Shown here in pieces: positions 39,351 to 56,796 of a DNA stretch of 64,000 nucleotides. The stretch lies in IMG/VR virus record IMGVR_UViG_3300043446_004613, positions 147,114 to 211,113 of that record; one strand, written 5' to 3'. The position numbers were made by a program, and so were the translations under genes. Within the stretch, counting starts at the first letter, position 1; every line of letters begins with the position of its first letter. The notes under the pieces were generated by a model that had not been told where the DNA came from, did no database searches, and saw nothing but the letters and a program-made list of their open reading frames with translations.

Positions 39351-39484
39351 TTCATGAACGATGAACCGATAAATACTGAGTATATTGATCCCGAGGCTGA
39401 ACGCTATCGGTCACATCTGTAGATAGTTCATGAACGATGAACCGTTAAATCCTGAGCATCTTGATCCCGAAGCTGAACGCTATC
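39326..39484 (+). repeat. 76-bp tandem duplication of a gene junction
   Basis: CGCTATC at 39326, 39402 and 39478; first 43 nt identical, then 5 substitutions; first copy encodes MNDEPINTEYIDPEAERYRSHL*. Confidence 0.9.
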
Positions 39485-40158
39485 TCAGCCAGCTTCCGCC
39501 CGCGCCGCCAGACGATACGCTTCAAGGTGTCGTTTCCGCGCTGCAACCGTTGGGCATTACAGAGCTTAAGGTGCAATATTCCGGCTATGGTGACAGTGGA
39601 GACATCGACTACATCAGCATAGAGCCGTCTGACATCGTTTTGCCGGATAAGTTCGATGAAGTGGTTAAAGACGTTGCGTGGAAAACAGCCTACAATCTAC
39701 ACTCCGGATTTGAGAATAACGAAGGTGGTCAAGGTCATGTAACTTTTGATTTTAACGATAGAACGGTCACGGTATATCACACAGACAATGTTGAGTTCGA
39801 CGAGGAACTGAACATGCCGAATTTACCTTTGCCGGAAGAATTTCGGGAATACACTGGGGATGACGGATCGTGCTACATTAGCTTCTACATGGGCAGCGAT
39901 GGTGATGTCTACTTCAATGATAAAACTGAAGGCATCGATGAAGATGCAAACAATGTTGGGGCTATTTCAACGCTTGTTTTTGATAACGCAGACTTAGGGG
40001 AAAATGATTCCTACTCTGGAGCAGTGCGCTGGCAAAATGGCTCAGACACCTGCTCTATCAGAGGCACGAAATCATGGACAGCGACTGACGAGGATAATGC
40101 CTCTGTAAACACGTATACGTTCGATGAAATTTTAGCGAATGAGCAGCTAGGTACCTAA
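39430..40158 (+). CDS. DUF6878-like protein (possibly two domains)
   Basis: VQYSGYGDSGDI...GFENNEGGQGHVTFD; adjacent to a DUF6915-like gene. Confidence 0.6.
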   Translation: MNDEPLNPEHLDPEAERYLSQLPPAPPDDTLQGVVSALQPLGITELKVQYSGYGDSGDIDYISIEPSDIVLPDKFDEVVKDVAWKTAYNLHSGFENNEGGQGHVTFDFNDRTVTVYHTDNVEFDEELNMPNLPLPEEFREYTGDDGSCYISFYMGSDGDVYFNDKTEGIDEDANNVGAISTLVFDNADLGENDSYSGAVRWQNGSDTCSIRGTKSWTATDEDNASVNTYTFDEILANEQLGT

Positions 40159-40640: not shown

Positions 40641-42395
40641 ATGATCACACTTTACGAAAACGCTACGCATGTCACCGTCACCGGTAACGCGCAAGAGATT
40701 GACGAGCTTGTAACCACTTTCCGCTTCCGCCCGGATGGGTACTTCTTTGCTCTCAGCTACCAGCGTAATGTAAAAAGCCAAGGCGAAGAAGGCTGGGATG
40801 GCTACACCTACCCTTTACAGCGCACCGGCAGGACAGCGGCCCGCGCTCTGCGCGGACGTAAAGACGAAATCATCCGGGCAGCCAAGATGTTGGGATATAA
40901 AGTTGACTTGGGTCACCTGCTTCCTTATCCGTTCGCACACCTTTTACCGGACGACATCCAGCCCGACTGTGTCAAAGGCGAGCACCGGCTGGATGACGAT
41001 CAGCGGCGCTGCATCTGTGATTGGCTCAAGGCCGGTATCGGCTTCAACAAAGTCACTGTGGGTGGCGGCAAGACCATGACTTTTGCAGGAGCCGCGTATA
41101 CAATCAAGCAGAAGTATCCCGAAGCTCGCTTTTTGTTCATTACGCCATCCGAGCGCCTTGTGCGGCAGGTGACCAAAGAGATGAAGAAGTTCCTGCCCGA
41201 CTTTGACATCGGACAGTGCGGCGGTGGACGCAAGGAATTTGCTGCGAAAGACATGGTGGTCTGCACCGTGGCGATGCTCAACAAGAACTACATCAGTCTG
41301 CGTAACGAGCAGTGGTTTGATACCTTCATGGCCATCCTGTATGACGAAGTTCACCACGCAGGCAGCCCGTCATCGATGAAGATTCTCCTCTCGATCCCGG
41401 CTTATTTCCGGCTCGGCGCGAGCGATTCCGGCAAAGAAAACGATCTGGTGCGTTTCAACAATGTCCGGGGTCTTTTCGGCCCGATGCTTAACGAAGTCCA
41501 TTCTGCGCCTTTGATAGACAAAGGGCGCTTAGCCCGCCCAAACATCTACATTGTAGACATTCCTGACTGGAAGAGTCGCTTTTCTGACGTGCCTTATCGC
41601 CCGACCATCGGCAGTAAAGCGCACTTGCTACTGGATGGTGCGTGGATAACCGGTACGTATGCAGGCCCGGTCTACGAGATGGTTGAGACTAAGGATGGTC
41701 AACAAAAAATAAAAACCAAAGCCGTCAAAACCGCCGAACGTGATGCTAACGGTGAGTGGATCGTGGTACATGAGCCTGTAACCGTAACCGGCGTCCACAA
41801 GATAAACGTCGACGGAGAAGACTTTGAGATTGAATCGCGTTGGTGCCTGCTGGAGCGGATGTACGATCGCGCCATCATCCAGTTCAAGTCACGTAACCAG
41901 ATGATTGTAGACTGGGTTCGCTTCTTCAACAAAAAGGGCTGGCCGACGGTGGTTGTCGCTACACGCACGACACATGTCTGCATCTTGGAGGCACTTCTAA
42001 AAGGCGCTATCGGCGAAGAGTCTGTGCGCGTGCTTATCGGTGAAGCTTCGCCCGAAGAACGTGACGCTACTTTTGAATGGTTCAGAAATACACCGGGCAG
42101 TGTGCTTGTCACACCGCTCGTCAAAGAAGGGGTCAGCATCAACGAGATACGGGCTATGGTGGTCGCCGACTACGTCAGCGACTACGACGTAGCCCGTCAG
42201 ATTATCGGACGCGGCATGCGTCCAAAGAAGACCGACAACCAAGCACACATCGTGTGGTTTTGGGATCGGCAACACACGGTGCTCAACCGTGGATGTAATG
42301 AGATTTTCAACCAACTAGAACGCGTCGAAGGCTTCGAGTTTTACCATCCCTGTGCGGGGCCGGAGACAGTGTTTACAAAAGACAAGGAATTATGA
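40641..42395 (+). CDS. Superfamily 2 DNA helicase (UvsW-like)
   Basis: TVGGGKT, DEVHH, LGASDS, EGVSI, RQIIGRGMR; ~100-aa insert between the RecA domains. Confidence 0.92.
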   Translation: MITLYENATHVTVTGNAQEIDELVTTFRFRPDGYFFALSYQRNVKSQGEEGWDGYTYPLQRTGRTAARALRGRKDEIIRAAKMLGYKVDLGHLLPYPFAHLLPDDIQPDCVKGEHRLDDDQRRCICDWLKAGIGFNKVTVGGGKTMTFAGAAYTIKQKYPEARFLFITPSERLVRQVTKEMKKFLPDFDIGQCGGGRKEFAAKDMVVCTVAMLNKNYISLRNEQWFDTFMAILYDEVHHAGSPSSMKILLSIPAYFRLGASDSGKENDLVRFNNVRGLFGPMLNEVHSAPLIDKGRLARPNIYIVDIPDWKSRFSDVPYRPTIGSKAHLLLDGAWITGTYAGPVYEMVETKDGQQKIKTKAVKTAERDANGEWIVVHEPVTVTGVHKINVDGEDFEIESRWCLLERMYDRAIIQFKSRNQMIVDWVRFFNKKGWPTVVVATRTTHVCILEALLKGAIGEESVRVLIGEASPEERDATFEWFRNTPGSVLVTPLVKEGVSINEIRAMVVADYVSDYDVARQIIGRGMRPKKTDNQAHIVWFWDRQHTVLNRGCNEIFNQLERVEGFEFYHPCAGPETVFTKDKEL

Positions 42396-43702
42396 AAAAA
42401 CAAATAGTACACGAGTTCGACGCAGAAATCGCAACACACTACAGTATCAACGCAGCCATCGTGTTCGGCTACTTCAACTTTCGGCTGAACAACAGGTCTT
42501 ACCTTCAGCTTGAATTTGAAGACCGCTACTGCCCAATCAAGTTCGACAATCTTCAAGCCATGTACCCCTACATGGCACGAAAAACGATCCAGAACGCGCT
42601 GGAACTGCTGTGCAAAGGCACTGATAAGCATCCAGCCCTGTTGAAGCGCCGGAAAAAGGGCAACATACTGGAGATCGGCCTTACCGGCGCGTTCAAGCTG
42701 ATCCAATCACCGCATAAGTTTGACACACAGCTTGCAGCCAAGTTGGGTGTCATCGCGGCAGTCGCTTACTACAACATCTCCTACTTCATTGGTAAGAACT
42801 GGTCAAAGGCGATGACTGACTACGTCTTGCGCCTTGATCCCCTCAAGTTTACGGACAATCAGGAGCGCACCCACGCCGCTTATTTAGCAACCCTACGTGC
42901 CGCTGCCTACACCGGTTCCATCAGCAACTGGCTAAAGCACCGTCCGTACGTTTCACAGCGTACCTCTGAACGGGCTTTTGCTGCTTTGATTGATGAAGGC
43001 CTGCTGCATAAACAGCGCGGTGATCGTCATTCTTTCAAGTATTGCTGGAGCAAGAAGGAACTGGAAAAGTATCTCGCTACGTCTTTGAATTTGTGTGGGA
43101 TAAAAAATTATCTCCCCAAAGATATACAGTTGCCGTCAAATGTATATGATGGACGTCAAATGTATATCGAAGGCGTCAAAGATATATCAAAACTGGTGTT
43201 AACTGCAACAGCATCAGCCACTTGCAAGCCTGTTGTAGAAGATTTAGTTGTAGGAAGAAGCGCTGACGCTTTTGGAGAAGATATTGACGAAGACATTGAC
43301 GAGCCGCCTTCGCTTCGCTCGGCGACGTCGTCCGGTGAACGTGCTTCGCACGTGGAGGCGGAGGATTTACGCTCTCCGGTAGAAATCCGTAAGATGCAGG
43401 AGATCGAAGCGAACGGTGGAGAAGACCCTGACAAGACGTTAGCTCAGAAAATACCTCGCGGTGTCGTTTCTGAGCTACATGTGATCGAAGGAGAGGAAGA
43501 CCGTCTTTACCTCAGTGATAAGGGACTCAGTGCGCTTCAGCGTAAGCTCAACAGACCGTACTACCCGAAAGCTCCACGGAAGAAGAAGACAGGTACCCGG
43601 CCATATCATAAGAAGATCATCCCGGATCATCCTGATTTCGATGACTACGTGGACGGACTGACACCGGAACAACGGGCAGCGTACTTTGCCAGTCTTTCGT
43701 AG
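42392..43702 (+). CDS. Putative replication initiator with tandem winged-helix-like repeats
   Basis: FDAEIATHYSINAAIV..YPYMARKTI and FDTQLAAKLGVIAAV..PYVSQRT repeats. Confidence 0.5.
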   Translation: MKKQIVHEFDAEIATHYSINAAIVFGYFNFRLNNRSYLQLEFEDRYCPIKFDNLQAMYPYMARKTIQNALELLCKGTDKHPALLKRRKKGNILEIGLTGAFKLIQSPHKFDTQLAAKLGVIAAVAYYNISYFIGKNWSKAMTDYVLRLDPLKFTDNQERTHAAYLATLRAAAYTGSISNWLKHRPYVSQRTSERAFAALIDEGLLHKQRGDRHSFKYCWSKKELEKYLATSLNLCGIKNYLPKDIQLPSNVYDGRQMYIEGVKDISKLVLTATASATCKPVVEDLVVGRSADAFGEDIDEDIDEPPSLRSATSSGERASHVEAEDLRSPVEIRKMQEIEANGGEDPDKTLAQKIPRGVVSELHVIEGEEDRLYLSDKGLSALQRKLNRPYYPKAPRKKKTGTRPYHKKIIPDHPDFDDYVDGLTPEQRAAYFASLS

Positions 43703-43709
43703 TTAAGGC

Positions 43710-44090
43710 GTGAAGTTAACGCCTGAACAACAGCGCGACATTGCCCGTCGTGCTCAGTGGTACTTTGACTGCTACTTCGGCCCACCCGGTGAGAGTGTGG
43801 TGTTTACCGGAGACGGCGTTGAAGACCTTGATCAGTTGATCAGTCGGTTGCAGTTCAACGGCACGACGAATTTCTTTCGTAACCAGAAGTTTTTCTGTGA
43901 CGTGGGTACCCAGTATTCCGACTGGAAACCGTTTGACATCGACGATGTCGTGGCGATCAAAGCGTTTTACGAAGCGTACTACGGTGACGTCAATAAACCG
44001 AACGTATACGCTTCAGGATCAAACGTGGCAATGCCGGTGGCGATAGACACTGAATATGGCGGGAGCAGCCCGCAGATTTCGATTGAATGA
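43710..44090 (+). CDS. Hypothetical protein
   Basis: GTG 3 nt after GTAGTTAA. Confidence 0.6.
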   Translation: MKLTPEQQRDIARRAQWYFDCYFGPPGESVVFTGDGVEDLDQLISRLQFNGTTNFFRNQKFFCDVGTQYSDWKPFDIDDVVAIKAFYEAYYGDVNKPNVYASGSNVAMPVAIDTEYGGSSPQISIE

Positions 44091-47047
44091 ACGAAGCCTA
44101 CCATAGTCGTTATGACAGACCGGAGATGACTCCGCACACAGCCGGTGCGGATGATCCGAACTTGTCTCTGGACGCGGCGGCAGAGATGGTGGACGCGATC
44201 CTCAACATCGGTTACGTGCGCCATAAGCAGTTGGAAGACTATGCGGCGGCTAGTCAGTCGCTTGAAGTCTATCGCGACGGAACATTCCATATCAAGCACG
44301 CACACGTGGGCCAGTATGCAGACTTTGTAGACCGTTCAAACCACAGTTACTTGAAAGAAACGTATCCGTGGCTGACGGATGTCGGTGATGGGCTTGGTTT
44401 TGACGTAGACACGTGGCCCGAAGAATTCGACAGCTTTGAGGCGTACCTTGCGTCGATAACTGAAGATAGCTGGACAGCCTTCTTTGAGGAACTTGAAAAT
44501 TTGGAGAACTACCCTGTGTTGGATGAGCAGGGCATGTCTGACCTTGAGATGAAGGAGACTGATCGGTGGATCACCGAGGACGGTACCCCAGATATGATCA
44601 AGGAGTTGATGTCTTACATCGACGACGCTTACGAGGTATTTCTTGTCTCAAAGATCACGCCGGACTTGATGTACGAATGGTGCCGCGAAACGGGTCATTA
44701 CCCGGAAAGTCAGGGCGAGGGCGCGGTGTGGCTGGACGTCAAAAGCTACGCGCAGCAGGAAGAGACACAGAACTGGTTCGTTGAGCACATCGACGACGAT
44801 CACGCAGGCTGGGAGGCTGTGCGGACGACGTTCTTTGAGTCGCAAGGTAACAAGTTTGACGCGCTGCTTAAAAAGCTCGCCATTGAGGATGAGGTTATCG
44901 CGACTGTCTACAACAAGCTCGATGCCGACTCTTTCCGCCGTCTGTGGGACTTGGCACACCCTGACCACTGGGCTGGCGGCGATGAGCCTTACTGGTATTT
45001 CTGGAAGCCATACAACGCTACAGAGATCGTGTGGGCTTACGGCTGGGAGCCGGAAGGCTGGGGCAACAATGACTGGATTGGGCAGTATCAACTCGCGCTT
45101 GAAGAGATGTACGATTCGGATAAGTTCCGCAAGCTCGTGGCAACTTTCTTTGAACGTCCGCCCAAAGACCACCCGGAACTGAAATTTGAGTCGATCGACC
45201 CGGATGATCCAAGTATCTTCATGGACTACGGTGGTGGCCTGAACCAGACCACGCTCTATGCCGATGATCGTATTGTTCTCATTGAGCCTAAAGATACAGC
45301 GGCGATAAATCATTACCTTGAAACAGGCGGCTATCAGCCAATCAACGGTCAAGACTACGAACGTTATTTCCGTTGGCCGGACAAGATTGTCATCTTGGAT
45401 AAAGTCGGTGAATCCGACGAGCAAGGCAGCCAATCGGTAAAGCCGCTCGGTATCTTGCTGCTGGAAGATGGAAACATGCGCTCATGGCCGCCTCCGACTT
45501 ACGGTGGAAAAGGCATCGACGTGTTGTTGGAAAACGTGGCTGTGCGGAAAGCCCTGCTTCAGTACTTCCGGCGTCTGATTGAAGAGGACAGTGAATCGTA
45601 CGCGCTAGGCAACTACCTGCTCAAGCTTGGAGGCCCCGCAGAGCTTCGGCGACAGGATCGTAAAGGTAACTTGCGGCTTGATGACTACAGCCTGCCGCTC
45701 GCGCTATACTACGTTAATCGTAAACAGTACAAGAAGATTCCAGCGCTATACGGCAAGCCGGTAGAGGCAGCGGAGCCTCGCGGAATTTGGTTGAGCTACA
45801 CAGGCTTTGATGATCTCGCGCCGGTTTTTGAGAACGAGAAAGCGGCAGAGGAAGTTTTCAGCCAAGAAAATTACCACTGGTTCGATTACACCGACGAGCC
45901 GGAAGCAAAAGATGTAATCCCTTATCTCACAGGTAAAGCGATGAAAAGTATCCGGGAGGCGCTTTTGAATCGCCGCGTCTGGATGCCCGATGCCGGTGAA
46001 AATCAGCGTGGAGACTACGTCGTGCTGACCAAGGCTGTCCTTGATCAGTATGATGATCAGACACTAAAAGACTGGCTGAGTGATCCGAGCGACGAAGATA
46101 CCGAAGATGGTGTGTTCGACGATATAATCGACGCGATTAAATCCGATGGCCGTCGCGCTATCGAGTCGTTAAGTCAGGACAATGTTTACACTGCGTATAC
46201 AGATAAAGCCATCGAACAGATCGGCGGCATTGAGTACAAGTGGGGCACGTCCGGCGTAGACAAGTCTGGTAGACCGAAAGAAGCGCTGCTTGTGTTGGTT
46301 CGCTGGAATGACATCGCTGAAGCAGCTACTACGTATTACAGCAACGAAAACGAAAATTTTAGCGGCGCTTTGGAAGACCTGATGGTGCAAGCCAACAAAA
46401 AGTCAGCCTCAGTGGACGATTCGCAGTATCACGCCAGCACCTACGATTTTGCCAAGTGCCAGCATCTCGATGGCCTCTTTTACGAGATATACGAGCTTGA
46501 AGCGCCTAAGCCTTATGTAGACCCAAACCAAACACAGTTGGCGCTTGAATCGCAGGTTGACTTAGACAGTCCTGACGAAATGCCTGCCATGTGGAGCGGC
46601 ATACCAGTGACACTTGAGAAGCGGGTCAACGCCGCTATCAAAGACGCAGCCAATGCGGAAGGTGCAGTGCTGTCACCTGCACATTTTAAGCTTATACCGA
46701 TCGAGCAGTACTCCGAAGAAGAGCTTGATTCATCGGACGGTCGTTTGACGCAACCAGACGCTGGACGGAAATTGGCGCTTTGGTTTGAATATGACGAGAA
46801 CTTTAAGTGGCGATCGATGCAGAGGCTGTTTGACGCTGTCACGGACATCGTTGTAAACGAGTTCCCGGAATATACGTCCGTGCGCTATTCGGCGAGTATG
46901 CTGGATGCTGACGTGTTAGGCTTGGAAGACATCGAACATCCAGAAAGTACACTCGTGTTTCTGTATGCTCTCCACGACGCTGCTCGAAAGCAGTCGGATC
47001 AAGAAGTGCTTGATCAGCTGGGCGCTGGAGAGGAAATTCCATTTTGA
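44087..47047 (+). CDS. Large acidic multi-module protein (probable head-internal protein)
   Basis: 986 aa, very Asp/Glu-rich; modules separated by LKFESIDPDDP and LALESQVDLD linkers. Confidence 0.6.
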   Translation: MNEAYHSRYDRPEMTPHTAGADDPNLSLDAAAEMVDAILNIGYVRHKQLEDYAAASQSLEVYRDGTFHIKHAHVGQYADFVDRSNHSYLKETYPWLTDVGDGLGFDVDTWPEEFDSFEAYLASITEDSWTAFFEELENLENYPVLDEQGMSDLEMKETDRWITEDGTPDMIKELMSYIDDAYEVFLVSKITPDLMYEWCRETGHYPESQGEGAVWLDVKSYAQQEETQNWFVEHIDDDHAGWEAVRTTFFESQGNKFDALLKKLAIEDEVIATVYNKLDADSFRRLWDLAHPDHWAGGDEPYWYFWKPYNATEIVWAYGWEPEGWGNNDWIGQYQLALEEMYDSDKFRKLVATFFERPPKDHPELKFESIDPDDPSIFMDYGGGLNQTTLYADDRIVLIEPKDTAAINHYLETGGYQPINGQDYERYFRWPDKIVILDKVGESDEQGSQSVKPLGILLLEDGNMRSWPPPTYGGKGIDVLLENVAVRKALLQYFRRLIEEDSESYALGNYLLKLGGPAELRRQDRKGNLRLDDYSLPLALYYVNRKQYKKIPALYGKPVEAAEPRGIWLSYTGFDDLAPVFENEKAAEEVFSQENYHWFDYTDEPEAKDVIPYLTGKAMKSIREALLNRRVWMPDAGENQRGDYVVLTKAVLDQYDDQTLKDWLSDPSDEDTEDGVFDDIIDAIKSDGRRAIESLSQDNVYTAYTDKAIEQIGGIEYKWGTSGVDKSGRPKEALLVLVRWNDIAEAATTYYSNENENFSGALEDLMVQANKKSASVDDSQYHASTYDFAKCQHLDGLFYEIYELEAPKPYVDPNQTQLALESQVDLDSPDEMPAMWSGIPVTLEKRVNAAIKDAANAEGAVLSPAHFKLIPIEQYSEEELDSSDGRLTQPDAGRKLALWFEYDENFKWRSMQRLFDAVTDIVVNEFPEYTSVRYSASMLDADVLGLEDIEHPESTLVFLYALHDAARKQSDQEVLDQLGAGEEIPF

Positions 47048-47049
47048 TT

Positions 47050-48360
47050 ATGACACCGTTTGGATTAGCCAGAAGCCTGCTTGAAGCCGAATACTCGTAT
47101 TCGTCGACGGACATCGCGCCGCCGCCGGAGATGATCGACTTCATCCTTGAATGGAACCGGTTACAGGTTCCTGAAGATGCTCTGGTCATCGATCCAGATG
47201 GCGGCAAAGGTCGTGAACGCGATCCGCATATCACCGTCAAGTACGGGCTGCTTGCAAGCGAAGTACCGGGTGAACTGAGGCAGATCGCCAAGGACACCAG
47301 ACCGTTCCCAATCTTCTTGGGTACTGTATCGTTGTTCACAACGAACCCGCAATTCGATGTGGTGAAAATCGATGTGGAGTCGCCCGAACTTCGCTTGCTC
47401 AACAAGCGCGTCAGCGATGCAATCCCACACGAAGACTCGTATCCGACCTACAATCCACATCTGACGCTCGCCTACGTTAAGAAAGGTTCCTGTACACATC
47501 TTGTCGGGGAAGACCCGTTTGAATCACCAGAGTCGACACGCGAATTCATTGCTGCCGGTATGCGCTTCAGCGGTGCCGGTGACGACAGTGACCCTGACCG
47601 TTTACGTGAGCATTTGCTGTTTAGCCGTGCGCCAAAAGCCAAAGAGGTAACCGAGGCGGTCATAGACGTTGAACGCACCGAAATCGACAGCATTGTAGAC
47701 ATCATTACACAGTGTGCGGAAGAATCCAACAGCGACCCGCGCATTTTTGTGGCCTTGGCTAATGATGCGTTGCAAGACAAAGGCGTCCTGTTCGGCGAAA
47801 CCCAGTTCAACGTGCCAGAAGCGGATGAGACAGGTGTTACCATACCGATCCCTTATCCCCAGCAGCTGCGCAGCCCATACTGGCCGAAGAGCTTGGCTTC
47901 CATTTTATACCATGAAGGCGTTCATCTTGGGCAGATGGATCGCATGCAAGACCCGAAGGCCGTAGCCGATAAGGCTACCGAGTACGTCGCTCCCGGCGGT
48001 AAGATGGATACTGATCGCTATCTGAACCAAAAGCAGGAAGTCATGGCGTGGGCGGCTAGCATGGTTGACTCTTGGCGTCGGCAAGGGCTTTCCAAGGAAC
48101 AGATGGTGCAGCGCCTTCGCTCGGGTAACTGGGGCTACGGAATGAAGTACTGGCATAATCGTCAGCGCTACCCGCAGACGTTCAACCGTTTCGTCAAGCA
48201 GGCGACTGAATACATCAACCTAAGTGAAAGCGAAGAAGCCCGCATTGAATCCGTTAATACTGATCCATTTGCCAACCTGAAGTTCCCGGTTGACCCGGCG
48301 CGGGTTGCTCAGTTCTTAAACAGTAACTGGAGGAAGCGCGTTGGGCGCATGATCCTGTAG
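47050..48360 (+). CDS. 2H phosphoesterase (Acb1/gp57B-like) fused to a HExxH domain
   Basis: DPHITVKYGL and YNPHLTLAYV (two HxT motifs); C-terminal LYHEGVH...QEVMAW. Confidence 0.8.
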   Translation: MTPFGLARSLLEAEYSYSSTDIAPPPEMIDFILEWNRLQVPEDALVIDPDGGKGRERDPHITVKYGLLASEVPGELRQIAKDTRPFPIFLGTVSLFTTNPQFDVVKIDVESPELRLLNKRVSDAIPHEDSYPTYNPHLTLAYVKKGSCTHLVGEDPFESPESTREFIAAGMRFSGAGDDSDPDRLREHLLFSRAPKAKEVTEAVIDVERTEIDSIVDIITQCAEESNSDPRIFVALANDALQDKGVLFGETQFNVPEADETGVTIPIPYPQQLRSPYWPKSLASILYHEGVHLGQMDRMQDPKAVADKATEYVAPGGKMDTDRYLNQKQEVMAWAASMVDSWRRQGLSKEQMVQRLRSGNWGYGMKYWHNRQRYPQTFNRFVKQATEYINLSESEEARIESVNTDPFANLKFPVDPARVAQFLNSNWRKRVGRMIL

Positions 48361-48372
48361 TTATTGCGTTAA

Positions 48373-51300
48373 ATGAGCATCGGCAATCTCAAAGAGCAGT
48401 TTCTGTACGATCTCCTGCCTGACGCTGTCGTCAGTCAGGATGATCGCGGGTACATCGAAGCAGTCGTTTCCGGCGTGCAAGACCGCTTGGAAGACGTGCG
48501 CTCTTATGCCAAGAAGCTGGACTTGTTCTGGCAGCCCGGTGCGCTTCCAACCGGGAGTTACAATGTCATTCTGGTCGATCTCGTCAGCGAACAGGGTAAA
48601 GCGTATACGCGCAGTCTGGACATCCAGACGGATACACCTGCTCCGGGCAGCAGCCAGCTTCCACTGTGGGCAGCTTTTCAACTGAACATCCCGGTCGAAG
48701 CATTAGGCGCGGTGCGTTACGGATACGATGCGTTGCGTGCTGTAGACGTTAACACTTTGGCGTGGCTGGCCCAGACACTGGGAGCGATCCTGTATGATAC
48801 CGACATGCTTGAGGGCAATGCGGTAAACGCCGCTCAAGTCCAACTGGTGTCTACGTGGTTCCCGCGCCTCAAGATCAAAGGCACCAATCAAAGCTTTGAA
48901 GTGCTCGGTAAGATTCTCGGCTTTGACGACATCCGCATGACCCCGCTGTGGTCACGCCTTAATCCGCACGTCCCGGACGATGTCGGCAACAGCGCCAATG
49001 CAACCGATTACGCCGCCGAGCCGGAATACGCGCCGCAGCAAGTTATCGGCCCTTACTACGATCCGTTCGTTTATCGTGACGGCCCTTTTTACAGCTGGAG
49101 CACTACGGTTAACAACGGCACGAACAGCACCGAATTTTACACGGAAAGCGTCAACGGTAAGAATCCTTGGATTCGCGTTGCACTGCTCGGTTCACTGGCA
49201 GGCACGAACGTACCATCGATTCAGAACGGGACAGTTACTCATCCAGCGACTGGCTCATACGCACTGGCCAACGGTAATTCACTGGCCCGCGCATACGTTG
49301 ATCCGCTCGGCAGCAGCGTTCGTTTTCAGGCGGTCGCCGACGGTGCTTCCTTCAACGGCATCTATGTCCACGTTACTACCGTGGGTACGCTGGCGACGAT
49401 TGCCATCGAAGACCGACTGTCGGCAATCAAGTACCGCAGCAGTTACTTCGATCTCGGCCTCACCGCTGACATGGACAAGGTGGAGGAAATCTTTGGAAGC
49501 CGGGCGGCGACGACCAATAAAGACCTCAAAGCCAATCCGAACCTGACCCCGGATGGAACGGCGGAGAGTCCATACCGGCCTTGGGTATCCGGCAGCATCG
49601 CTGTTGCCGAGACGACGACAGACTGGGTGACTTCAAACGGCGACATCACCTACACGGTTGTTGCTCGTCAGCAAGCTGATCCAGCGGTCGGTGACCGCCA
49701 GCTGAACACGGATTCACTGGTCGTTGCCGGTGTGCAGGTCACGCAAGCCTTGGAAGAGGTACGTGCAGCTACCCGCCTACCCCGGCGTAGCCAGACCGGT
49801 TTCTTGGTGAATGACAGCGCTTGCTATGCGCCGTACGCTGTAAACGGCACGTTGTTTACAGAACCGACAGCAGTCGCCGCCTCAAGCGGAACCTGCGCTG
49901 ATGCGCCGTTGGGTTCGTATGTGGCTGCTCTGACGGCAGTCATTCCCAATGTAACGGAGATCAAGTGGGTCGCTGAAGCAAACGTTCAGTACGTCCTGAC
50001 CGCTTATTTCATATCGCCGCCCGCACCAAACGTCGTGCTTGGAACAGTCACAGCGCAGAACGCAGGAACGTACGCTTTTTACACCGATACCAGCCCATCC
50101 GCCGCTTTCTCCATCGAACCGTCTCCGGTCTATGCGTTCCCGGTGCAATCGAACACGGCAACGCTGCCTTTGACCGCTGAGGTTAATCCGGCAAACTACG
50201 ACGAATACATCTACGCGATAAAGTCGGATACGAACATAACCTGCACCGGTTCGTTTAATTTCGCGACTGGGCAGTACGGCTTCAGCCACAGCAACATTGC
50301 AGATTTTACGGTGTTGACGGCATGGACGCTGGTGAGCACAGGTACGATTCGGCCTGAGCCTTATGAAAGTGTTCTGGTTTGTGAAACAGGCACGTTTTAC
50401 ACCGATAGCACGTTAGGCCCGACGAACACAAATCCGACTGCGCCGTGGCCGGATACAGGCATATTTTTTCAACAAGGCGAACTGATCTCGATAACGACGG
50501 TCGGTTCTGTTTCACCAACGCCCGGTTATTGGATCGGGCCGGAAGGCTACAACTGGGCACCTGACCGGCTGGACAATCGGTTCAAGCACGAAGCTTTGCT
50601 TGGTCGCGTCGGGCTATCGGGCAGCATCTTTTTGGTCGGCTCGCTCTATTCCGGCGCGGCGACAGACACCGGAAGCCTTTACCTAGTCACGAATGACGTA
50701 TCACGCGCCAACAACGAAGGCTCGTTTACATCGTACATTACCGTCTGTTCCGAAGAAGAACAACGGGCGGCGGAAGCGTGCTTGTGTCGTCCCGAAGACG
50801 AAGATGACGGGCTGATTTACGAGGTTGCTGATGATTTTCCGTGGAACCGTGAAGTCACGGTCGGCGGTGAACTGGTTGAGTTGGACATCTACCGCACAGG
50901 CACGGACATCGCTGTTCAAGAGCTAGAGGAGGCAACAGCTTTCAACGACCAGACCGGTGTCGACATAAATGTCTACGCGCTGACCAGTCCCAACACATCG
51001 GTACCTCGTCTGACCTACGAACCGCGTTCAATCGCTAAAGGCGTATACAGTCCGGCCTACACCGCCATCGGCTATCAAGGCACACTCAAGGACTTGTCTA
51101 CGCTAACATCAGCGGAAACAGACTTCATACGTCCTCCGATCGGTTCCAGCTTTGGCGATACAGAGACGGACTATGACGTGCTCTTTCAGCCCGGATACAG
51201 TCTGTACCACGTTGGCCTCGCTCAAGGCGTTTTGGTTGCGGACTTGGTTAAATTTTTCGGCCCTCAGCACAGCGTGGGCTTGGTCGGTTGGTTCGCATTT

Positions 51301-54300
51301 AATGAGCACGTAGACGCAGCGCTTTCTGTAGTCGACCACAGCTTCCGGGCTACGCCGACAGACTTGATCGGTGTTAATAGCGCAGACCGCCATTTTGACT
51401 CTGTTCGTGGATGGTGCCTGACGTTGAATGACAGTCAGGTGATTGCCGATGAATACCGTGATTTGGTAGACGAAGTGACGGCGGCGTTCTGGATCAAGCG
51501 CACGGCGACTGCACTCTACCCGTCAACGGAAACTACGATTGTCGACTGTTCACTGGTCTATTTCACGCTAAGCCCCGGCGGTGCCGTGACTGGCTACGCC
51601 AAAAAGGACAACGGTGTAGGCACTGCCCTTGGCAGCGTAGTGATTGCAGACGGCGAATGGCACTTCATTTACATCCGGCGCAGCGAACACAATGCAGTGT
51701 TCGGTGATGCAACGTTGTCTACCAGTGCTGTGGAAATCAACGTAGCTGGTTCATACCTTGCCGGTGATCCCGATATTGATACGCTGGTAAATGTGCAAGC
51801 TGCCAATGGCGCTGCATTTACGATCCACGATCTGCGCATCTGGAACGTGACCAAGACAGCAGCGGAAATGGACTTGATCCGTTACCATAATCCGACACCG
51901 ACGCTCTGCACTTACCGCCTTGGGTTCATCTATACGCTGGATCGAAAGGACAAATACGGTATCAAGATTCTACCGTCCGGTTGGGCTTACCCGAATGTAT
52001 TGCCTGCGTGGTATCGTCGCACGCGCCAAGGTCTGGTGTTGCGCTACGATAGCATGGGTTCCTACCACGGCGACAGCCGTTTCAAGGAAGTCGGTATCGG
52101 CGACTGTCGTCCGTTGCCGGACACTTATACGCTGGGTGCTCAGTTCACGTGTATGACTGGTGAAGGCACGACGCCGTACAGCACTGACAGCGGACAGTTG
52201 CCCGGTTGGTCTGCTAAGTGGCAGTCCCAGAACAATTCAGGCAACTACCTGAAATTAAACTTCAGCGGCAGCACGGCTAACGGTATTCCAGCGGTCACTG
52301 TTTCAAGCGGTACCGCAACGCCGTGGCCGAACACGATGACGCAGACTAATCCGTTCCGTGAGTACGTGTACGTGCTTACCACGAACGGGCAGCATGTATA
52401 CCAGATGGCTTTGAATGGTGATGCCGCATCAACATGGTTGGAGGCGGTTTTCGTGGGTACAGTAGGAAATGAAGAAGCCACCGGGGCTTATACACGGCTC
52501 AGCAAGAACGGCGTAGGCATGCTTTTCGCCGACCCGACCACAATGCGCGGCGTTATCTCAGCCGCGAATCCGTGGCCGACGCTTGGTATGTTCACAACGC
52601 CGCCGCTGTACATGTATCTGACCAGCCGCAGCAAGCAGACAGTGGGAGATGCTCACGACACATGGGTCGACAAGACACCTACAGGCAGTCCGCCCGTAGT
52701 GACGCCCGAGGATAATGCCGTCGATTGGCAGCCCATGCCAAGCATCGTGCGTATCGACTCGTACGGAACATCTTTGTATACGCCTGCACTCGGCAAAGCG
52801 GGCGTGCTTGAGTTTACAGGTAGCAACTACCTCGCTACAGGCAACTACGAGCTAACGATTGTTAGTGCGCAAGTAGGTCAAGCGGATGAAGACTTTGACG
52901 GATTCGCTGTCGGCATCAATGTGAACGACACGGTTATCCAGCGCCGCCTGCTGCGCGGTAAGAGCGGCTACAATTTTAGCGGCACGGATACGTTTCAGTT
53001 TTATCTGGACGACGAAGTGAGCGGGAATTATCTGATCAGTTTCGATTGGACGAACCCATTGACAGATACGGCAAAAGGAACCAAGCGCCAGCTGGCGATC
53101 CTTGGTTACACACTCCGCCACATCAATACTGAGATTTTTAAGGTTGAGGCGCTGAGCGTTGGGTCACCCACATTTACGCAGCTTTCTACCGACATCAGTT
53201 CTATTGGTACGACACCCGGCGGCTGGTTTGCAGCAATCAATAGCTATGGTACTGCGGTAGGCTACCAGCACGAATCGACAATCTATACGTCGAACGAAAA
53301 TACAGCGGCAATATATCCCGTTGGAGATACGCTCTCTCCGCTGACAAACGAACGTCGCGACGACATCATTTATACCGGAACGAATGTCGTCGTTGCCGAT
53401 ACCGGTACAATCACGATGCCGAACTTTACGGCGGCAGGCACGGCTCCGCAGGACGCTCCGGCTTGGGTTTGGGCAGGTGCCTTGACCAGTAATCCATCGT
53501 TCACAGTGACAGTCAAAACGACCGGTCAAACGACACTTCGCTTAGCGGTAAGCGAGTCGAGCACTTTTAGCGATAGTTCGATGACCGACATGGTGGCCTC
53601 GGGTGCCGACAATTACACCAAGATCAAAGTTGATGGGTTGAAGCCGTGGACAACCTACTATTACGCTGTCGAGACAGGCGGAAGCATCCATTATGAGATG
53701 GCAGGTACCGTTGCAACATCCGGTACAGGTGCCCAGAGCTTTAAGTTTGCGGTGGTCGCTTGCGAGAACAATACCAGTTTAAGCACGGTATCCAACGCGG
53801 CTTGGGGATTTATTCACACGCAGAATCCGATGTTTGTAATGCACGTTGGGGATTTCCATTACTACAACATCAACGTAAACGATCCATCTTTTTACCGGAC
53901 AGCGTTCAACAACGTGCTATCGGAAAGCAAACACAAAGCGTTCTACCGGCAACATGGCGTCATGTACATGTGGGATGATCACGATTACGGCCCGAATGAC
54001 GGCAGTAGCGCAAACGTATCACGCCCGGCAGCCCGTTCGGCCTACCGGCAAGTGGTACCGCATCTGCCTTTGGCAGCGGGCGATGGTAACCAGCCGATTT
54101 ATTACGCGTTTACTGTAGGGCGCTGTCGCTTCATCGTCACTGATTGCCGATCGGAACGTACGCCAGTAACGGTGGCTGATAACAACAACAAGACCGTACT
54201 AGGCGCGGCGCAAAAAGCTTGGTTCAAGCAGGAACTGCTGGCGGCTAGTTCAAGTGGAGACATTGCAGCGATCTTCTGGGTCAATTCCTTCCCGTGGACA

Positions 54301-54756
54301 GGCGTTGCCCATCCCGAAGCGAATCCGAGCGTGGAGAACTGGGCAGCCTATCCGACTGAACGTAAAGAGATCGCAGATTACATTTACAGCAAGGCCATCC
54401 GCAAAGTGTTCATTCTCTCGGGCGACATGCACGCCACGGCTTTTGACGATGGTCGAACCTACGATTTTCACGCAAACGGTACGAATTCCGTAGCCCCTAA
54501 TGGACACGGACTACCGGTATTTCAGTGCGGTCAGCTATACAACTCGAATAGCCAAAAGGGAACGCCATACCAAATCGGCCCGTTCTATACAGGCTCAGGC
54601 ACGCGTTCTATCTTTGGCATGGTTCAGGTGGACGACTACGGAAGTTACATGCTCATCACTTTCACCGCCCGCAGCGGAGCCAGCGGAGCAATCGTGAACG
54701 TGGGCGGTATCTACGTTACGGCAACACTTAACTCAGCAGAATCACCCAGACCATGA
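48373..54756 (+). CDS. phoD: Baseplate wedge-type protein with LamG domain and C-terminal PhoD phosphatase
   Basis: N-terminal gpI/gp7-like LAWLAQTLG...KIKGT; LamG (AFWIK, EWHFI, IHDLRIWN); PhoD from about 53461 (VACE, GDFHY, WDDHD..PND, DCRS, GDMH). Confidence 0.88.
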   Translation: MSIGNLKEQFLYDLLPDAVVSQDDRGYIEAVVSGVQDRLEDVRSYAKKLDLFWQPGALPTGSYNVILVDLVSEQGKAYTRSLDIQTDTPAPGSSQLPLWAAFQLNIPVEALGAVRYGYDALRAVDVNTLAWLAQTLGAILYDTDMLEGNAVNAAQVQLVSTWFPRLKIKGTNQSFEVLGKILGFDDIRMTPLWSRLNPHVPDDVGNSANATDYAAEPEYAPQQVIGPYYDPFVYRDGPFYSWSTTVNNGTNSTEFYTESVNGKNPWIRVALLGSLAGTNVPSIQNGTVTHPATGSYALANGNSLARAYVDPLGSSVRFQAVADGASFNGIYVHVTTVGTLATIAIEDRLSAIKYRSSYFDLGLTADMDKVEEIFGSRAATTNKDLKANPNLTPDGTAESPYRPWVSGSIAVAETTTDWVTSNGDITYTVVARQQADPAVGDRQLNTDSLVVAGVQVTQALEEVRAATRLPRRSQTGFLVNDSACYAPYAVNGTLFTEPTAVAASSGTCADAPLGSYVAALTAVIPNVTEIKWVAEANVQYVLTAYFISPPAPNVVLGTVTAQNAGTYAFYTDTSPSAAFSIEPSPVYAFPVQSNTATLPLTAEVNPANYDEYIYAIKSDTNITCTGSFNFATGQYGFSHSNIADFTVLTAWTLVSTGTIRPEPYESVLVCETGTFYTDSTLGPTNTNPTAPWPDTGIFFQQGELISITTVGSVSPTPGYWIGPEGYNWAPDRLDNRFKHEALLGRVGLSGSIFLVGSLYSGAATDTGSLYLVTNDVSRANNEGSFTSYITVCSEEEQRAAEACLCRPEDEDDGLIYEVADDFPWNREVTVGGELVELDIYRTGTDIAVQELEEATAFNDQTGVDINVYALTSPNTSVPRLTYEPRSIAKGVYSPAYTAIGYQGTLKDLSTLTSAETDFIRPPIGSSFGDTETDYDVLFQPGYSLYHVGLAQGVLVADLVKFFGPQHSVGLVGWFAFNEHVDAALSVVDHSFRATPTDLIGVNSADRHFDSVRGWCLTLNDSQVIADEYRDLVDEVTAAFWIKRTATALYPSTETTIVDCSLVYFTLSPGGAVTGYAKKDNGVGTALGSVVIADGEWHFIYIRRSEHNAVFGDATLSTSAVEINVAGSYLAGDPDIDTLVNVQAANGAAFTIHDLRIWNVTKTAAEMDLIRYHNPTPTLCTYRLGFIYTLDRKDKYGIKILPSGWAYPNVLPAWYRRTRQGLVLRYDSMGSYHGDSRFKEVGIGDCRPLPDTYTLGAQFTCMTGEGTTPYSTDSGQLPGWSAKWQSQNNSGNYLKLNFSGSTANGIPAVTVSSGTATPWPNTMTQTNPFREYVYVLTTNGQHVYQMALNGDAASTWLEAVFVGTVGNEEATGAYTRLSKNGVGMLFADPTTMRGVISAANPWPTLGMFTTPPLYMYLTSRSKQTVGDAHDTWVDKTPTGSPPVVTPEDNAVDWQPMPSIVRIDSYGTSLYTPALGKAGVLEFTGSNYLATGNYELTIVSAQVGQADEDFDGFAVGINVNDTVIQRRLLRGKSGYNFSGTDTFQFYLDDEVSGNYLISFDWTNPLTDTAKGTKRQLAILGYTLRHINTEIFKVEALSVGSPTFTQLSTDISSIGTTPGGWFAAINSYGTAVGYQHESTIYTSNENTAAIYPVGDTLSPLTNERRDDIIYTGTNVVVADTGTITMPNFTAAGTAPQDAPAWVWAGALTSNPSFTVTVKTTGQTTLRLAVSESSTFSDSSMTDMVASGADNYTKIKVDGLKPWTTYYYAVETGGSIHYEMAGTVATSGTGAQSFKFAVVACENNTSLSTVSNAAWGFIHTQNPMFVMHVGDFHYYNINVNDPSFYRTAFNNVLSESKHKAFYRQHGVMYMWDDHDYGPNDGSSANVSRPAARSAYRQVVPHLPLAAGDGNQPIYYAFTVGRCRFIVTDCRSERTPVTVADNNNKTVLGAAQKAWFKQELLAASSSGDIAAIFWVNSFPWTGVAHPEANPSVENWAAYPTERKEIADYIYSKAIRKVFILSGDMHATAFDDGRTYDFHANGTNSVAPNGHGLPVFQCGQLYNSNSQKGTPYQIGPFYTGSGTRSIFGMVQVDDYGSYMLITFTARSGASGAIVNVGGIYVTATLNSAESPRP

Positions 54757-56036
54757 ATCAAGTAGGCGATCAAGTTATCTTGCTGGCGACACCGATACCT
54801 ACCGGTAGCGATGTTTACAGCTATGTCTGGGACTTTTGGGATAATTCTTCGGCAGCGACCAGCCAACCGTTTATCACTAAAGTTGTAAACATGGGCGGCA
54901 ATCCGTTCAACGATGTGCTGTCTTACCGTTGCCGCCCGGTAGCTGTCGACGGTCAAAGTGATACGGTGCTTGGTTACATCACGGCAAATCAGCCGCCGAC
55001 CATATTGCCGGGGGTCAGCATCAGCCGAAATGACGAATACTTTACGTATCCGACACGGCTATCGTTGACGGCTATCGACATTGATGGCGACGCCATTGGA
55101 TTCAGCTGGTATCAGGGAACAAATTACATCGGTTCCGGTACCACGGCATCTGCCGGTAGCGCGAATGGAACATGGCACGGCCCGGAGTGGTACAACGGGA
55201 CGACGATTGTCGTATCGCGCCCGGCTACCGAGTGTTACTACGATCTGCTCGTAACTAGCCCGCGCACCGTCACATGTAAGGTTTATGATGTGCGCGGTGG
55301 TACGAGTTCCGTCGACTTTTTGCTGCGCGGTGACGCGAATAGACCACCGGATGCAAGTCTTACCGCAGGTGTAAACGGCGTCGCCTTTGACGCAAGTACG
55401 CCAGTCCAAGCTAGGATCGGTGAAAGCCAGCAGCTGACTTTCAGCGTGTTTGTCGGCCCGATGCCGACACACGTTGTTTATTTTGATTGGAGTTTTTCGG
55501 GAAGTAACCACTGGACGATGGCTCCGCACAGCGTAAACGGCACCACGACTTATCTGGCCAACGGTGCGATCCAGAACACCGTGGAACGCGACATCAGTGC
55601 GGAAGTAGTCACCAGTGGCACAGCCAAGCTGGCCCGTGTGGATGTACGTGTATACGCCGAAAATATCTACGACAGTCGCGTCAGTTATACCGACATAAGC
55701 TATTCGGTATTGCTCATCGAGAATAGTGCTCCTAGCGCAGTCACGGTGGGGCGCTACGATGAAAACAACCTGCCGATTGATACATCGACCGGAACCGGCA
55801 CGAAGATTTTGTTCACCGCGACCGGCACAGACTACAATAACGACTGGATGACCTACGAATGGGCGTTCTCGCATACCGTGCCGCATCTGCCCAGCCCGTT
55901 TTACTGCTGGGGGCCGAAAGTCGTATTCGATACGACCGGCGCGGTGGTCGATACGACGCTTGAAGGTCTGCTTACGGTTACGGATGTGTTGGGCGGCAAA
56001 CTTATCGTAGCGCTGCCTTCTACCACGCTGGAATAA
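54753..56036 (+). CDS. PKD/Ig-domain virion protein
   Basis: YSYVWDFWD, FSWYQG, YEWAFS repeated PKD-like motifs. Confidence 0.7.
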   Translation: MNQVGDQVILLATPIPTGSDVYSYVWDFWDNSSAATSQPFITKVVNMGGNPFNDVLSYRCRPVAVDGQSDTVLGYITANQPPTILPGVSISRNDEYFTYPTRLSLTAIDIDGDAIGFSWYQGTNYIGSGTTASAGSANGTWHGPEWYNGTTIVVSRPATECYYDLLVTSPRTVTCKVYDVRGGTSSVDFLLRGDANRPPDASLTAGVNGVAFDASTPVQARIGESQQLTFSVFVGPMPTHVVYFDWSFSGSNHWTMAPHSVNGTTTYLANGAIQNTVERDISAEVVTSGTAKLARVDVRVYAENIYDSRVSYTDISYSVLLIENSAPSAVTVGRYDENNLPIDTSTGTGTKILFTATGTDYNNDWMTYEWAFSHTVPHLPSPFYCWGPKVVFDTTGAVVDTTLEGLLTVTDVLGGKLIVALPSTTLE

Positions 56037-56052
56037 ATATTGTTTTTTAGTG

Positions 56053-56081
56053 TTGACGCAGCTTACGACACTGTATACAGT
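56053..56081 (+). promoter_or_regulatory. Sigma70-like promoter
   Basis: TTGACG-17-TACAGT; ATG 8 nt downstream. Confidence 0.7.
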
Positions 56082-56089
56082 ACAGGCGT

Positions 56090-56749
56090 ATGGCAAAACT
56101 AAACTCTCTTGATATTCCAGATGCGGCCTCTAAAAAGGCCAAAACCGAAATCCCCACCGTCGTCGTCACCGGCGATATTGTCACCCGCTACAACGAGGCA
56201 CGCGATGCCGCTGACCGGGCCGAAGAAATTCTCAACGAACTGAAGCCAACGCTTACCGAAGAAGGTTTGCAGGGCGTGTTCAATCACAACGCGCAACATC
56301 CTGAAGACCCAAAAGCCCGCATCAGCAGCGTCAATCTCAAGGACGACGCCACCGGCGAGATCGTTCAATTCTCATGGACGAAGAAGAACCTCAAATGCGA
56401 CCCGAAACAGGTCGAAGCCGAGTTCAATACCTTGCGCACTGTGGATGGTAAAAAGGCCAACGTGAACGACTACGTCGGCTATGAGATTGCAGCCAGTTTC
56501 GATACCAAAGTGTTCATGGTTGACGGCAAGTTCAACCGCAACCGCTATGATCAGTTCATGACAGCCATCCAGCAGGTAGCTGCTGATCTGGGCGTCGATA
56601 ATCCGCTTACCTGCGGAAAAGTGCTCGTTCCGAAGGCCGACTTCCACGATAAACGCTGGCAGGCTTTCAACGTCGAGGACAACCTCTGGTTGCAGCAGCT
56701 GCTTCCGACACAGTGCAGCCTTAAACCTATTCGCCCGGAGGCAGACTAA
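56090..56749 (+). CDS. Hypothetical early protein
   Basis: Own promoter and terminator; biased codon usage. Confidence 0.75.
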   Translation: MAKLNSLDIPDAASKKAKTEIPTVVVTGDIVTRYNEARDAADRAEEILNELKPTLTEEGLQGVFNHNAQHPEDPKARISSVNLKDDATGEIVQFSWTKKNLKCDPKQVEAEFNTLRTVDGKKANVNDYVGYEIAASFDTKVFMVDGKFNRNRYDQFMTAIQQVAADLGVDNPLTCGKVLVPKADFHDKRWQAFNVEDNLWLQQLLPTQCSLKPIRPEAD

Positions 56750-56760
56750 ATATCACTGGA

Positions 56761-56796
56761 ACAGGGCGGCGCTAACGTGTGCCGCCCTGTTCTTTT
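56761..56796 (+). terminator. Rho-independent terminator
   Basis: ACAGGGCGGC/GCCGCCCTGT 10-bp stem followed by TCTTTT. Confidence 0.8.

Follow-up and report, generated by a model that had tools for sequence, protein, structure and literature searches.

A 2H phosphoesterase fused to a HExxH domain in a large freshwater phage, a candidate packaged anti-defence protein

What kind of protein is encoded by the gene at positions 47050 to 48360 of a large phage genome fragment, and at which moment of infection could it act? The gene lies in a stretch of 64,000 nucleotides, here called the window, which forms the final 64 kb of a 211,113-bp phage record from a freshwater metagenome (IMGVR_UViG_3300043446_004613 in IMG/VR; estimated completeness 93%). 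Coordinates are positions within this window, unless they are preceded by G000, which denotes the whole record. The gene encodes a real two-domain protein, in which a 2H phosphoesterase is fused to a conserved HExxH domain. The protein is a compact variant of the known polyvalent or ejected anti-defence proteins and not an Acb1 enzyme. From sequence and context, an evenly balanced case can be made that it is a cargo of the 'polyvalent' type, which would be packaged, cut and injected and would probably act against host defence.

The open reading frame (ORF) spans 47044 to 48360 on the plus strand, and residues are counted from the TTG at 47044. Translation almost certainly starts at ATG 47050, which lies 2 nucleotides past the TGA of an upstream ORF of 986 amino acids, has GGAGAGGA approximately 15 nucleotides to its 5′ side and encodes the start methionine that is shared by the homologues. 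The product (47050..48360, +; 436 amino acids, 49.4 kDa, isoelectric point (pI) 5.2) consists of a leader, the 2H domain, a linker, the HExxH domain, a helical region and a basic tail. That the frame is genuine, as an initial annotation of the locus had assumed, is confirmed by approximately 30 full-length homologues with 50–62% identity on metagenomic contigs of up to 250 kb. One protein, P0001, seemed to lack the first 12 residues that make up the leader, which proved to be a gene-calling artefact. Conservation was counted in an alignment of 20 homologues, and at this level of identity the conserved motifs stand far beyond chance.

The 2H phosphoesterase domain covers residues 15–195 (47086..47628, +). 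Both HxT motifs that had been noticed at the outset are present: PHIT at residues 61–64, with the first catalytic motif H62-I-T64 at 47227..47235 (+), and PHLT at residues 138–141, with the second catalytic motif H139-L-T141 at 47458..47466 (+), which aligns with H113 of T4 Acb1. H62, T64, H139 and T141 are invariant. The domain has what defines the 2H superfamily, i.e., two HxT/S motifs on a pseudo-symmetric alpha+beta fold. In Pfam, residues 57–147 match PF13563 (2_5_RNA_ligase2) with 46.5 bits at a cutoff of 27, LigT_PEase (PF02834) reaches 22.9 bits, marginally below its cutoff of 23.3, and Acb1 (PF23474) reaches 16.4–16.6 bits at a curated family cutoff of 27. Authentic T4 Acb1 scores 202 bits with the PF23474 model, and this model yields sub-threshold matches in ordinary bacterial genomes too. 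Matched to PDB sequences, the family profile finds YjcG (E 3e-4) and Acb1 (E 6e-4, 0.39) at a similarly low level, and hhalign is equally weak for T4 Acb1 (27.5) and E. coli ThpR (26.8, ThpR probability 7%). Membership of the Acb1 family, which had been proposed from the paired motifs, was therefore rejected on both the PF23474 score and the weak hhalign match; the domain is a generic 2H enzyme and not a true Acb1.

Comparison of structures leads to a similar picture. The scores were approximately 14 for Usb1, 13.8 for YjcG, approximately 13 for AKAP18, 11.3–12.4 for Acb1 and 10–12 for viral 2′-5′ phosphodiesterases, and the alignments to Acb1 covered 134 residues for FBB1 and 151 residues for BCSR5. 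LigT-type enzymes rank slightly above Acb1; the lead is a slight one, because Z depends on length and the smaller Acb1 receives a lower Z; beyond this lead, VIA and Foldseek gave no discrimination between subfamilies. Nearest by structure are LigT/ThpR and archaeal and bacterial 2′,3′-cyclic phosphodiesterases (5ldi, 4qak, 1iuh, 1vdx, 5h7e), at 14–15% identity. LigT membership was rejected as well, given the PF02834 score and the lack of an Rnl2-type ligase or RtcB partner. Judged from its sequence, the domain is a 2H phosphoesterase with an intact two-histidine site that belongs to a separate clade, neither Acb1 nor LigT.

Acb1 (T4 gp57B; PDB 7t26/7t27, 9q2g) is a 2H nuclease directed against cyclic oligonucleotide-based antiphage signalling systems (CBASS); it hydrolyses the cyclic oligonucleotides of CBASS, 3′3′-cGAMP among them, on the 3′ side of adenosine (Hobbs et al., 2022, PMC9117128). 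It has a compact 2H fold of approximately 140–150 amino acids, a short lid at its C-terminus, which closes on the ligand, and, in FBB1 Acb1, the aromatic base-stacking residues Y12, W74, F107 and W147 (PMC9117128). Like Acb1, the protein studied here is a phage-encoded 2H fold with two HxT/S histidines and has a similar local motif around the second histidine, and metal-independent chemistry may by analogy be possible for it. Unlike Acb1, it has a 2H domain of approximately 180 residues in which no equivalent of the lid was identified, and it carries a leader, a second domain and a tail in addition.

The gene is the sole 2H gene in the genome, and neither an Rnl2-type RNA ligase (PF09414) nor RtcB was found in this 93%-complete genome, the search for Rnl1 being uninformative. 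The lack of these two ligases agrees with section 20 of Iyer, Burroughs, Anand, de Souza and Aravind (2017, PMC5512222), in which polyvalent-type 2H domains are described as never paired with RNA ligases; such domains are predicted there to be Usb1-like RNases or degraders of defence nucleotide signals. We infer a counter-defence role of the 2H enzyme by analogy, since it has no ligase partner, since its clade occurs in effector-type fusions and since Acb1 and the viral 2′-5′ phosphodiesterases provide precedents.

An exhaustive search recovered this 2H module in 4,500 proteins, of which 2,373 had E below 1e-10. Many of the 4,500 are 1,000–7,768 amino acids long and have the module internally or near the C-terminus. 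Fusions to portal, MuF and S78 prohead protease are confirmed by Pfam, those to lysozyme, MuF_C, GGDEF and PF18823 come in addition from precomputed annotations, and matches in BFVD include proteins labelled 'capsid morphogenesis' and 'structural'. With 2H and HExxH in one polypeptide and a 2H clade that recurs with MuF and portal, the protein has the make-up of a polyvalent protein. As described in the domain sections of Iyer et al. (2017), polyvalent proteins likewise have several effector domains per polypeptide, a 2H clade that lacks links to RNA ligases and has MuF or portal as fusion partners in other proteins, and a metallopeptidase (MPTase) with the same core topology of a three-stranded sheet, a HExxH helix and a Glu helix; they are also predicted to be delivered together with DNA and processed into separate units. 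In contrast to those proteins, the one encoded here has only two enzymatic domains in 436 amino acids and its HExxH domain matches no Pfam MPTase model. It apparently uses hydrophobic-x-Glu sites of a prohead protease and a common leader, whereas autoproteolysis by the MPTase is invoked in those sections, and neither a basic C-terminal tail nor an acidic partner of approximately 820 amino acids is among the features that they describe.

Two short segments outside the folded cores bear on packaging and processing. The first is the 12-residue N-terminal leader ending in L-L-E|A (47050..47085, +), a candidate capsid-targeting propeptide with a prohead-protease site at E14. This glutamate is invariant and is preceded by a hydrophobic residue at position −2 in 90% of the homologues. 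The second is the VTEA linker mentioned in the initial annotation. Residues 196–205 (47629..47658, +) are disordered in the model, with a predicted local distance difference test (pLDDT) below 50, and V-T-E|A at residues 202–205 forms a candidate maturation cleavage site, in which E204 (codon 47653-47655) is 100% conserved as the sole invariant linker residue, with a hydrophobic residue at −2 in 100% of the homologues. E14 and E204 are the only fully conserved glutamates with a hydrophobic −2 residue outside the folded cores.

The leader is not confined to this protein. L-[LIMG]-E within residues 7–22 occurs in 19 of the 232 ORFs of the genome, where 4.1 are expected from internal windows (p=4e-8), and at least a dozen ORFs carry a clear hydrophobic-V-x-x-L-L-E leader followed by acidic or proline-rich sequence. 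The carriers are unrelated past the first 12–25 residues; three of them lie directly upstream of the S77 protease gene and one (G000 109515-110867) has a phage lysozyme domain. Leader ORFs, which are approximately 105–450 amino acids long with a leader of 10–14 residues, are found in the window at 791-1126 (−) and 29514-29891 (+), and further at G000 938, 19509, 38449, 75150 (−), 86492 (−), 109515, 124988, 125632, 126396, 132003 and 143887. Most have no known family, and they are candidates for head-internal or ejected cargo. The HExxH protein also exists on its own, as P0132; here too a leader of this type stands at the N-terminus, and the E|AVVGP junction comes after it as in the fused protein.

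Since the motif had been defined after seeing the data, a fixed pattern was tested in relatives. In the head-module loci of seven relatives (protease identity 38–78%) it was found in 8 of 147 ORFs against 3.1 expected (p=0.013). Enrichment was also seen in G003 (120 kb, protease identity 78%), with 10 of 132 against 2.1 expected (p=6e-5), and in G004 (129 kb, protease identity 67%), with 7 of 126 against 2.5 expected (p=0.013). Approximately half of the leader carriers in G003 and G004 have no homologue in G000.

The genome also encodes an S77 prohead protease of the T4 gp21 type at G000 127484-129178 (PF03420, 67 bits; PHROG 207, 'head maturation protease'), which is followed by the major head protein and lies approximately 18 kb upstream of the window, and a T4-like portal at 30499-32472. 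In T4, the internal proteins and Alt have capsid-targeting propeptides of 10–20 residues that are removed by gp21, the internal proteins are diverse defence proteins having only the propeptide sequence in common, and homologous proteases of giant phages cut after glutamate, often at several sites (PMC3012670, PMC5694885). The phage studied here resembles T4 in its short leader of 10–14 amino acids ending in hydrophobic-x-Glu, in the sharing of this leader by otherwise unrelated proteins scattered over the genome, and in its S77 protease and T4-like portal. T4 IPIII is about the size of the predicted mature pieces (21 and 23 kDa), and gp21 prefers L/I-x-Glu. Unlike the T4 capsid-targeting sequences, the leader reads hydrophobic-V-x-x-L-L-E, and the protein has an extra internal site and a basic C-terminal tail.

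On the basis of these elements, the following course of events may be proposed. The leader, and possibly the basic tail or the partner protein, would direct the precursor into the prohead, where the prohead protease would cut after E14 (L-L-E|A), E204 (V-T-E|A) and probably E402 (R-I-E|S), releasing a 2H enzyme of 21.3 kDa and a HExxH protein of 22.7 kDa. Both pieces would enter the cell together with the DNA and be active from time zero. There, the 2H enzyme would cleave a ribose-phosphate bond by a metal-independent two-histidine mechanism, working like Acb1 or the viral 2′-5′ phosphodiesterases; its likeliest substrate would be a host defence nucleotide signal (cyclic or 2′-5′-linked oligonucleotides), the alternative being host RNA. 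The HExxH domain would be a zinc peptidase that attacks a host protein or aids processing. Packaging, cleavage and substrate are all inferred. The initial suggestion of a packaged and protease-matured protein is made plausible by the S77 protease, by E14 and E204, by the common leader and by the fusions of the 2H clade to portal, MuF and prohead protease. By analogy, the simplest reading is that the phage lineage uses a code resembling T4 capsid targeting and that the protein is one of its cargoes. A literature search on virion proteomics of 2H-fusion proteins returned nothing usable, and among sequencing runs no RNA run was found to contain the sequence; a recent preprint describes an ejection protein that antagonises CBASS by a different mechanism, which provides a precedent for virion-delivered anti-CBASS activity.

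The second half of the protein begins with the HExxH domain core, residues 206–346 (47659..48081, +), in which helices, a three-stranded sheet, the HExxH helix and the Glu helix follow one another and which is a probable zincin-like metallopeptidase. The HEGVH motif (H290–H294, 47911..47925, +) and the downstream glutamate, both recognized initially, are well conserved: H290, E291 and E332 are invariant, and H294 is present in 19 of the 20 homologues and in 6/6 of the C-domain set. E332 belongs to the invariant segment Q329-K-Q-E332 (48028..48039, +), a candidate third zinc ligand on the following helix. Folded alone, the C-terminal half gave a pLDDT of 85 and a predicted template modelling score (pTM) of 0.74. 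In the numbering of this C-domain model, strands lie at 48–51, 59–61 and 64–68, the helix at 80–99 bears H90-E-x-x-H94, and E332 is located on the helix at 130–146. A HExxH motif on a helix after a three-stranded sheet, with invariant H and E, is characteristic of zincins, and the same core topology is described in section 8 of PMC5512222 for the zincin-like MPTase, which ranks there as the most frequent domain of polyvalent proteins.

Searches with the C-domain in Pfam, PHROG, PDB sequence profiles, the Foldseek pdb set and VIA gave no significant match (best Foldseek E 0.5), two further homology searches returned the same narrow family only, and in the language-model atlas all that came back were viral clusters without names, LPD23 and SprT-like being leads below threshold. 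Weak matches were obtained in VIA to the zincins M1 aminopeptidase (catalytic domains), the VgrG2b effector peptidase, ArdC, M36 and DUF885, in Foldseek to ArdC, abylysin, AM0627, MATCAP and M48, and in Pfam, for some family members, to DUF6782 and BSP. The weak matches recur on zincins and on no other fold class. ArdC or P1 DdrB-type MPTase domains and the VgrG2b effector metallopeptidase are among the closest known systems. Together with the model, this makes a zinc peptidase the fairly probable identity of the HExxH domain.

There is nonetheless some chance, clearly the smaller one, that the domain is no peptidase. It would then be helical, would serve as an adaptor or in packaging, and would keep HExxH as a relic or a purely structural metal site. 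The conserved part that matters would then be the helical region (48082..48249, +), which ends in R-I-E|S (E402) and is present in all family members, including those without HExxH, together with the basic tail. The tail (48250..48357, +) has 36 residues, a pI of 11.6, low pLDDT and a DPF...FPxDP...FL...IL signature. Of the 223 collected relatives, 58 have this signature within their final 60 residues, directly after the 2H module in proteins of approximately 1000 amino acids. A hydrophobic-x-E-S/A site usually comes just before the tail in these relatives, distant homologues included; stand-alone HExxH proteins have no basic tail. Approximately 20 natural relatives of about 330 amino acids lack residues 205–303, including HExxH, and keep the 2H domain, the QKQE-like Glu helix, the helical region and the tail, so that the peptidase core is dispensable in part of the family. 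Because a similar segment, HRQE, persists in these variants, the role of QKQE may exceed zinc binding. An adaptor would also fit the lack of a significant sequence or fold match to any peptidase and the one homologue in which H294 is replaced by R. It would leave unexplained why the motif residues stay invariant, or nearly so for H294, at approximately 50% identity and also in stand-alone proteins, and it accords poorly with the zincin core topology, with the repeated weak matches to zincins and with the frequency of the MPTase among polyvalent proteins in the section cited.

A number of observations weigh against packaging and processing of the protein. T4 internal proteins are mostly basic, whereas the cargo considered here is acidic, with a pI of approximately 5 for the mature pieces. 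No enrichment of the leader motif is seen in G001, a distant relative with a complete genome of 225 kb and terminal repeats (protease identity 47%; 6 of 278 ORFs against 4.7 expected, p=0.34), and the 2H protein of this relative (C1:24450-24983, −) is a bare 177 amino acids, without HExxH domain, tail or extended leader. These two findings suggest that the code and the fusion are lineage-specific, and the exact leader code indeed appears from the sequences to be specific to the phage lineage. Where the 2H module lies deep inside giant proteins, a segment L-x-E-S/A-L-L-x-E directly precedes its first strand, which counts in favour of processing sites at module boundaries. As a leader helix always accompanies the 2H module, however, the leader could also be a structural element of the 2H clade and not a cleavage signal. 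The transcription unit that contains the gene opens with a helicase and a replication-initiator-like gene and includes no recognisable virion gene. Finally, in the models a signal-degrading role is indistinguishable from a role as RNase or in RNA-end processing, and structure slightly favours LigT-type enzymes over Acb1.

Several of these points would suit a cytoplasmic, non-packaged anti-defence enzyme, synthesised once infection has begun, as T4 Acb1 is, and degrading signals made of cyclic oligonucleotides, an account which we regard as rather improbable. The N-terminal helix and the linker glutamate would then be structural, and the C-terminal half would be regulatory or substrate-recruiting. 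The start of the operon, the bare 2H protein of G001 and the constant company of leader and 2H module agree with it, and T4 Acb1 is soluble in infected-cell lysates, with no packaging reported (PMC9117128). It has more difficulty with the same leader on many unrelated proteins in three genomes, with the fusions of the clade to portal, MuF and prohead protease, with a stand-alone HExxH protein that has a leader of its own and with an invariant glutamate within a disordered linker; moreover, the protein falls outside the Acb1 family.

All evidence for packaging would apply equally to an injected Usb1/Mpn1-like RNase effector, i.e., a toxin-like takeover factor that attacks host RNAs and leaves 2′,3′-cyclic phosphates, comparable to the PBECR RNases fused to MuF or portal. 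In section 20 of Iyer et al. (2017) this is the first option, since 2H and PBECR have MuF and portal architectures in common. Sequence and model do not separate RNase activity from hydrolysis of nucleotide signals; no RNA-binding domain was detected, and the experimentally proven phage 2H enzymes (Acb1) target signals, so that an RNase effector is unlikely. Least probable is RNA repair of the LigT/ThpR type, in which the 2H domain would open 2′,3′-cyclic phosphate ends left by host anticodon nucleases for tRNA re-ligation: the full-size 2H domain, unlike the compact Acb1, and the near-cutoff PF02834 score are in its favour, and it is contradicted by the missing Rnl2-type and RtcB ligases (Rnl1 search uninformative), by the ligase-free 2H clade of Iyer et al., by a profile similarity to ThpR as weak as that to Acb1, and by portal, MuF and lysozyme fusions in a phage effector context, which suit an effector rather than repair.

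The packaged cargo proposed here would have a partner encoded directly upstream (44087..47047, +), an acidic protein of 986 amino acids (113 kDa, pI 4.4). It consists of an 'A' module of approximately 820 amino acids and a 'B' module of 165 amino acids, which are separated by L-A-L-E|S as an internal junction (E821, codon 46547-46549); the B module closes with a conserved ...IPF. The gene under study is translationally coupled to this protein, as had been noted from the start. In other phages both are found in one polypeptide: P0083 is a natural fusion of a homologue of the 986-aa protein (39% identity over 844 aligned residues) with the whole 2H–HExxH protein, and the A module precedes the 2H module in at least 34 collected proteins. 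This indicates that the two proteins are functionally linked. Pfam, PHROG, PDB and atlas searches gave no assignment for the 986-aa protein, and the A module is widespread among phages, where it is without annotation. In L002, a contig of 229 kb, the counterpart appears as products of 792 and 181 amino acids (L002:7022-9969). Since the C-terminal tail of the 792-residue product is aberrant, the split probably reflects a frameshift or an error of assembly rather than gene fission, and it does not count as evidence here.

Downstream, a syntenic gene encodes an acidic protein of 2127 amino acids (48373..54756, +) with a LecA-like lectin segment at residues 695–789 and a C-terminal PhoD-type phosphodiesterase at 1690–2100 (PF09423, 80 bits; PHROG hydrolase/phosphodiesterase families; PDB 2yeq, 7e-12; LecA (PA-IL), 6e-3). 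Its first 1200 residues have no match in annotated phages. A role of this protein as fibre or surface enzyme is conceivable, as is delivery as a second phosphodiesterase.

The probable transcription unit (40641..56793, +) comprises overlapping or tightly packed ORFs for the helicase, for proteins of 436, 126 and 986 amino acids, for the 2H–HExxH protein, and for proteins of 2127, 427 and 219 amino acids, and is closed by a strong terminator with a 15-bp stem at 56758-56793. The order is retained in L002 and L003, which have GT9, helicase, approximately 390, 110 and 1000 amino acids and the 2H–HExxH gene, followed by a PhoD protein of approximately 1950 amino acids, proteins of approximately 424 and 220 amino acids and a helix-turn-helix protein. 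In the search for late promoters, TATAAATA was absent from the genome, sigma-70-like matches were at chance level, and the sole enriched upstream 8-mer, TGTATACA, does not mark this operon, so that no late-promoter class could be defined. Given also the genes with which the unit opens and the absence of recognisable virion genes from it, the description of the locus as a late or virion operon was not sustained.

The palindrome TGTATACA occurs in 40 copies in 211 kb, where approximately 3 are expected for a random 8-mer palindrome, and nine copies are intergenic, though only approximately 3% of the genome is non-coding. The copies in the window lie at 782, 2672, 12024, 15123, 16747, 17093, 21338, 22688, 24256, 25919, 30076, 30230, 32660, 35578, 37193, 39230 and 56072. 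The element may serve as a regulator or operator site, or may be a target of modification. Two genes lie shortly before the operon, at 38214-39350 (+) and 39430-40158 (+); they encode a GT9 (heptosyltransferase-like) glycosyltransferase and a DUF6878 protein. The helicase of L002 and L003 likewise has a GT9 gene ahead of it, and another glycosyltransferase-like gene is found upstream of the head module, at G000 124045.

More widely, it is conceivable, if still doubtful, that a large clade of phages with T4-type proteases uses a modular 'cargo code' by which interchangeable anti-defence enzymes are loaded, cut and injected. Tentatively, its parts would be a hydrophobic-V-x-x-L-L-E leader for each module, hydrophobic-x-Glu junctions and a basic PFPxD...IL tail. 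Such a grammar of targeting and processing, as read from the sequences, has apparently not been described before and is partly replicated in relatives. Should the proposed delivery fail, the protein would still be a clean, well-conserved example of polyvalent 2H and MPTase-like modules, and would represent a 2H clade outside both Acb1 and LigT. To our knowledge, the enzymes that destroy defence signals, Acb1 and Apyc1, must be synthesised after infection. If the proposal is true, this would be the first pre-made 2H enzyme degrading nucleotide signals that is delivered with a peptidase at time zero, and CBASS or type III CRISPR signalling would be beaten before any phage gene expression. A capsid-borne enzyme would act before the host alarm builds up, which would change timing models of signalling defences. 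Leader, junctions and tail would further make ejected anti-defence cargo recognisable by a simple rule in the sequences of large uncultured phages; in the relatives, approximately half of the leader-bearing proteins are lineage-specific unknowns. The leader could also become a handle for packaging foreign proteins, like the T4 capsid-targeting sequence.

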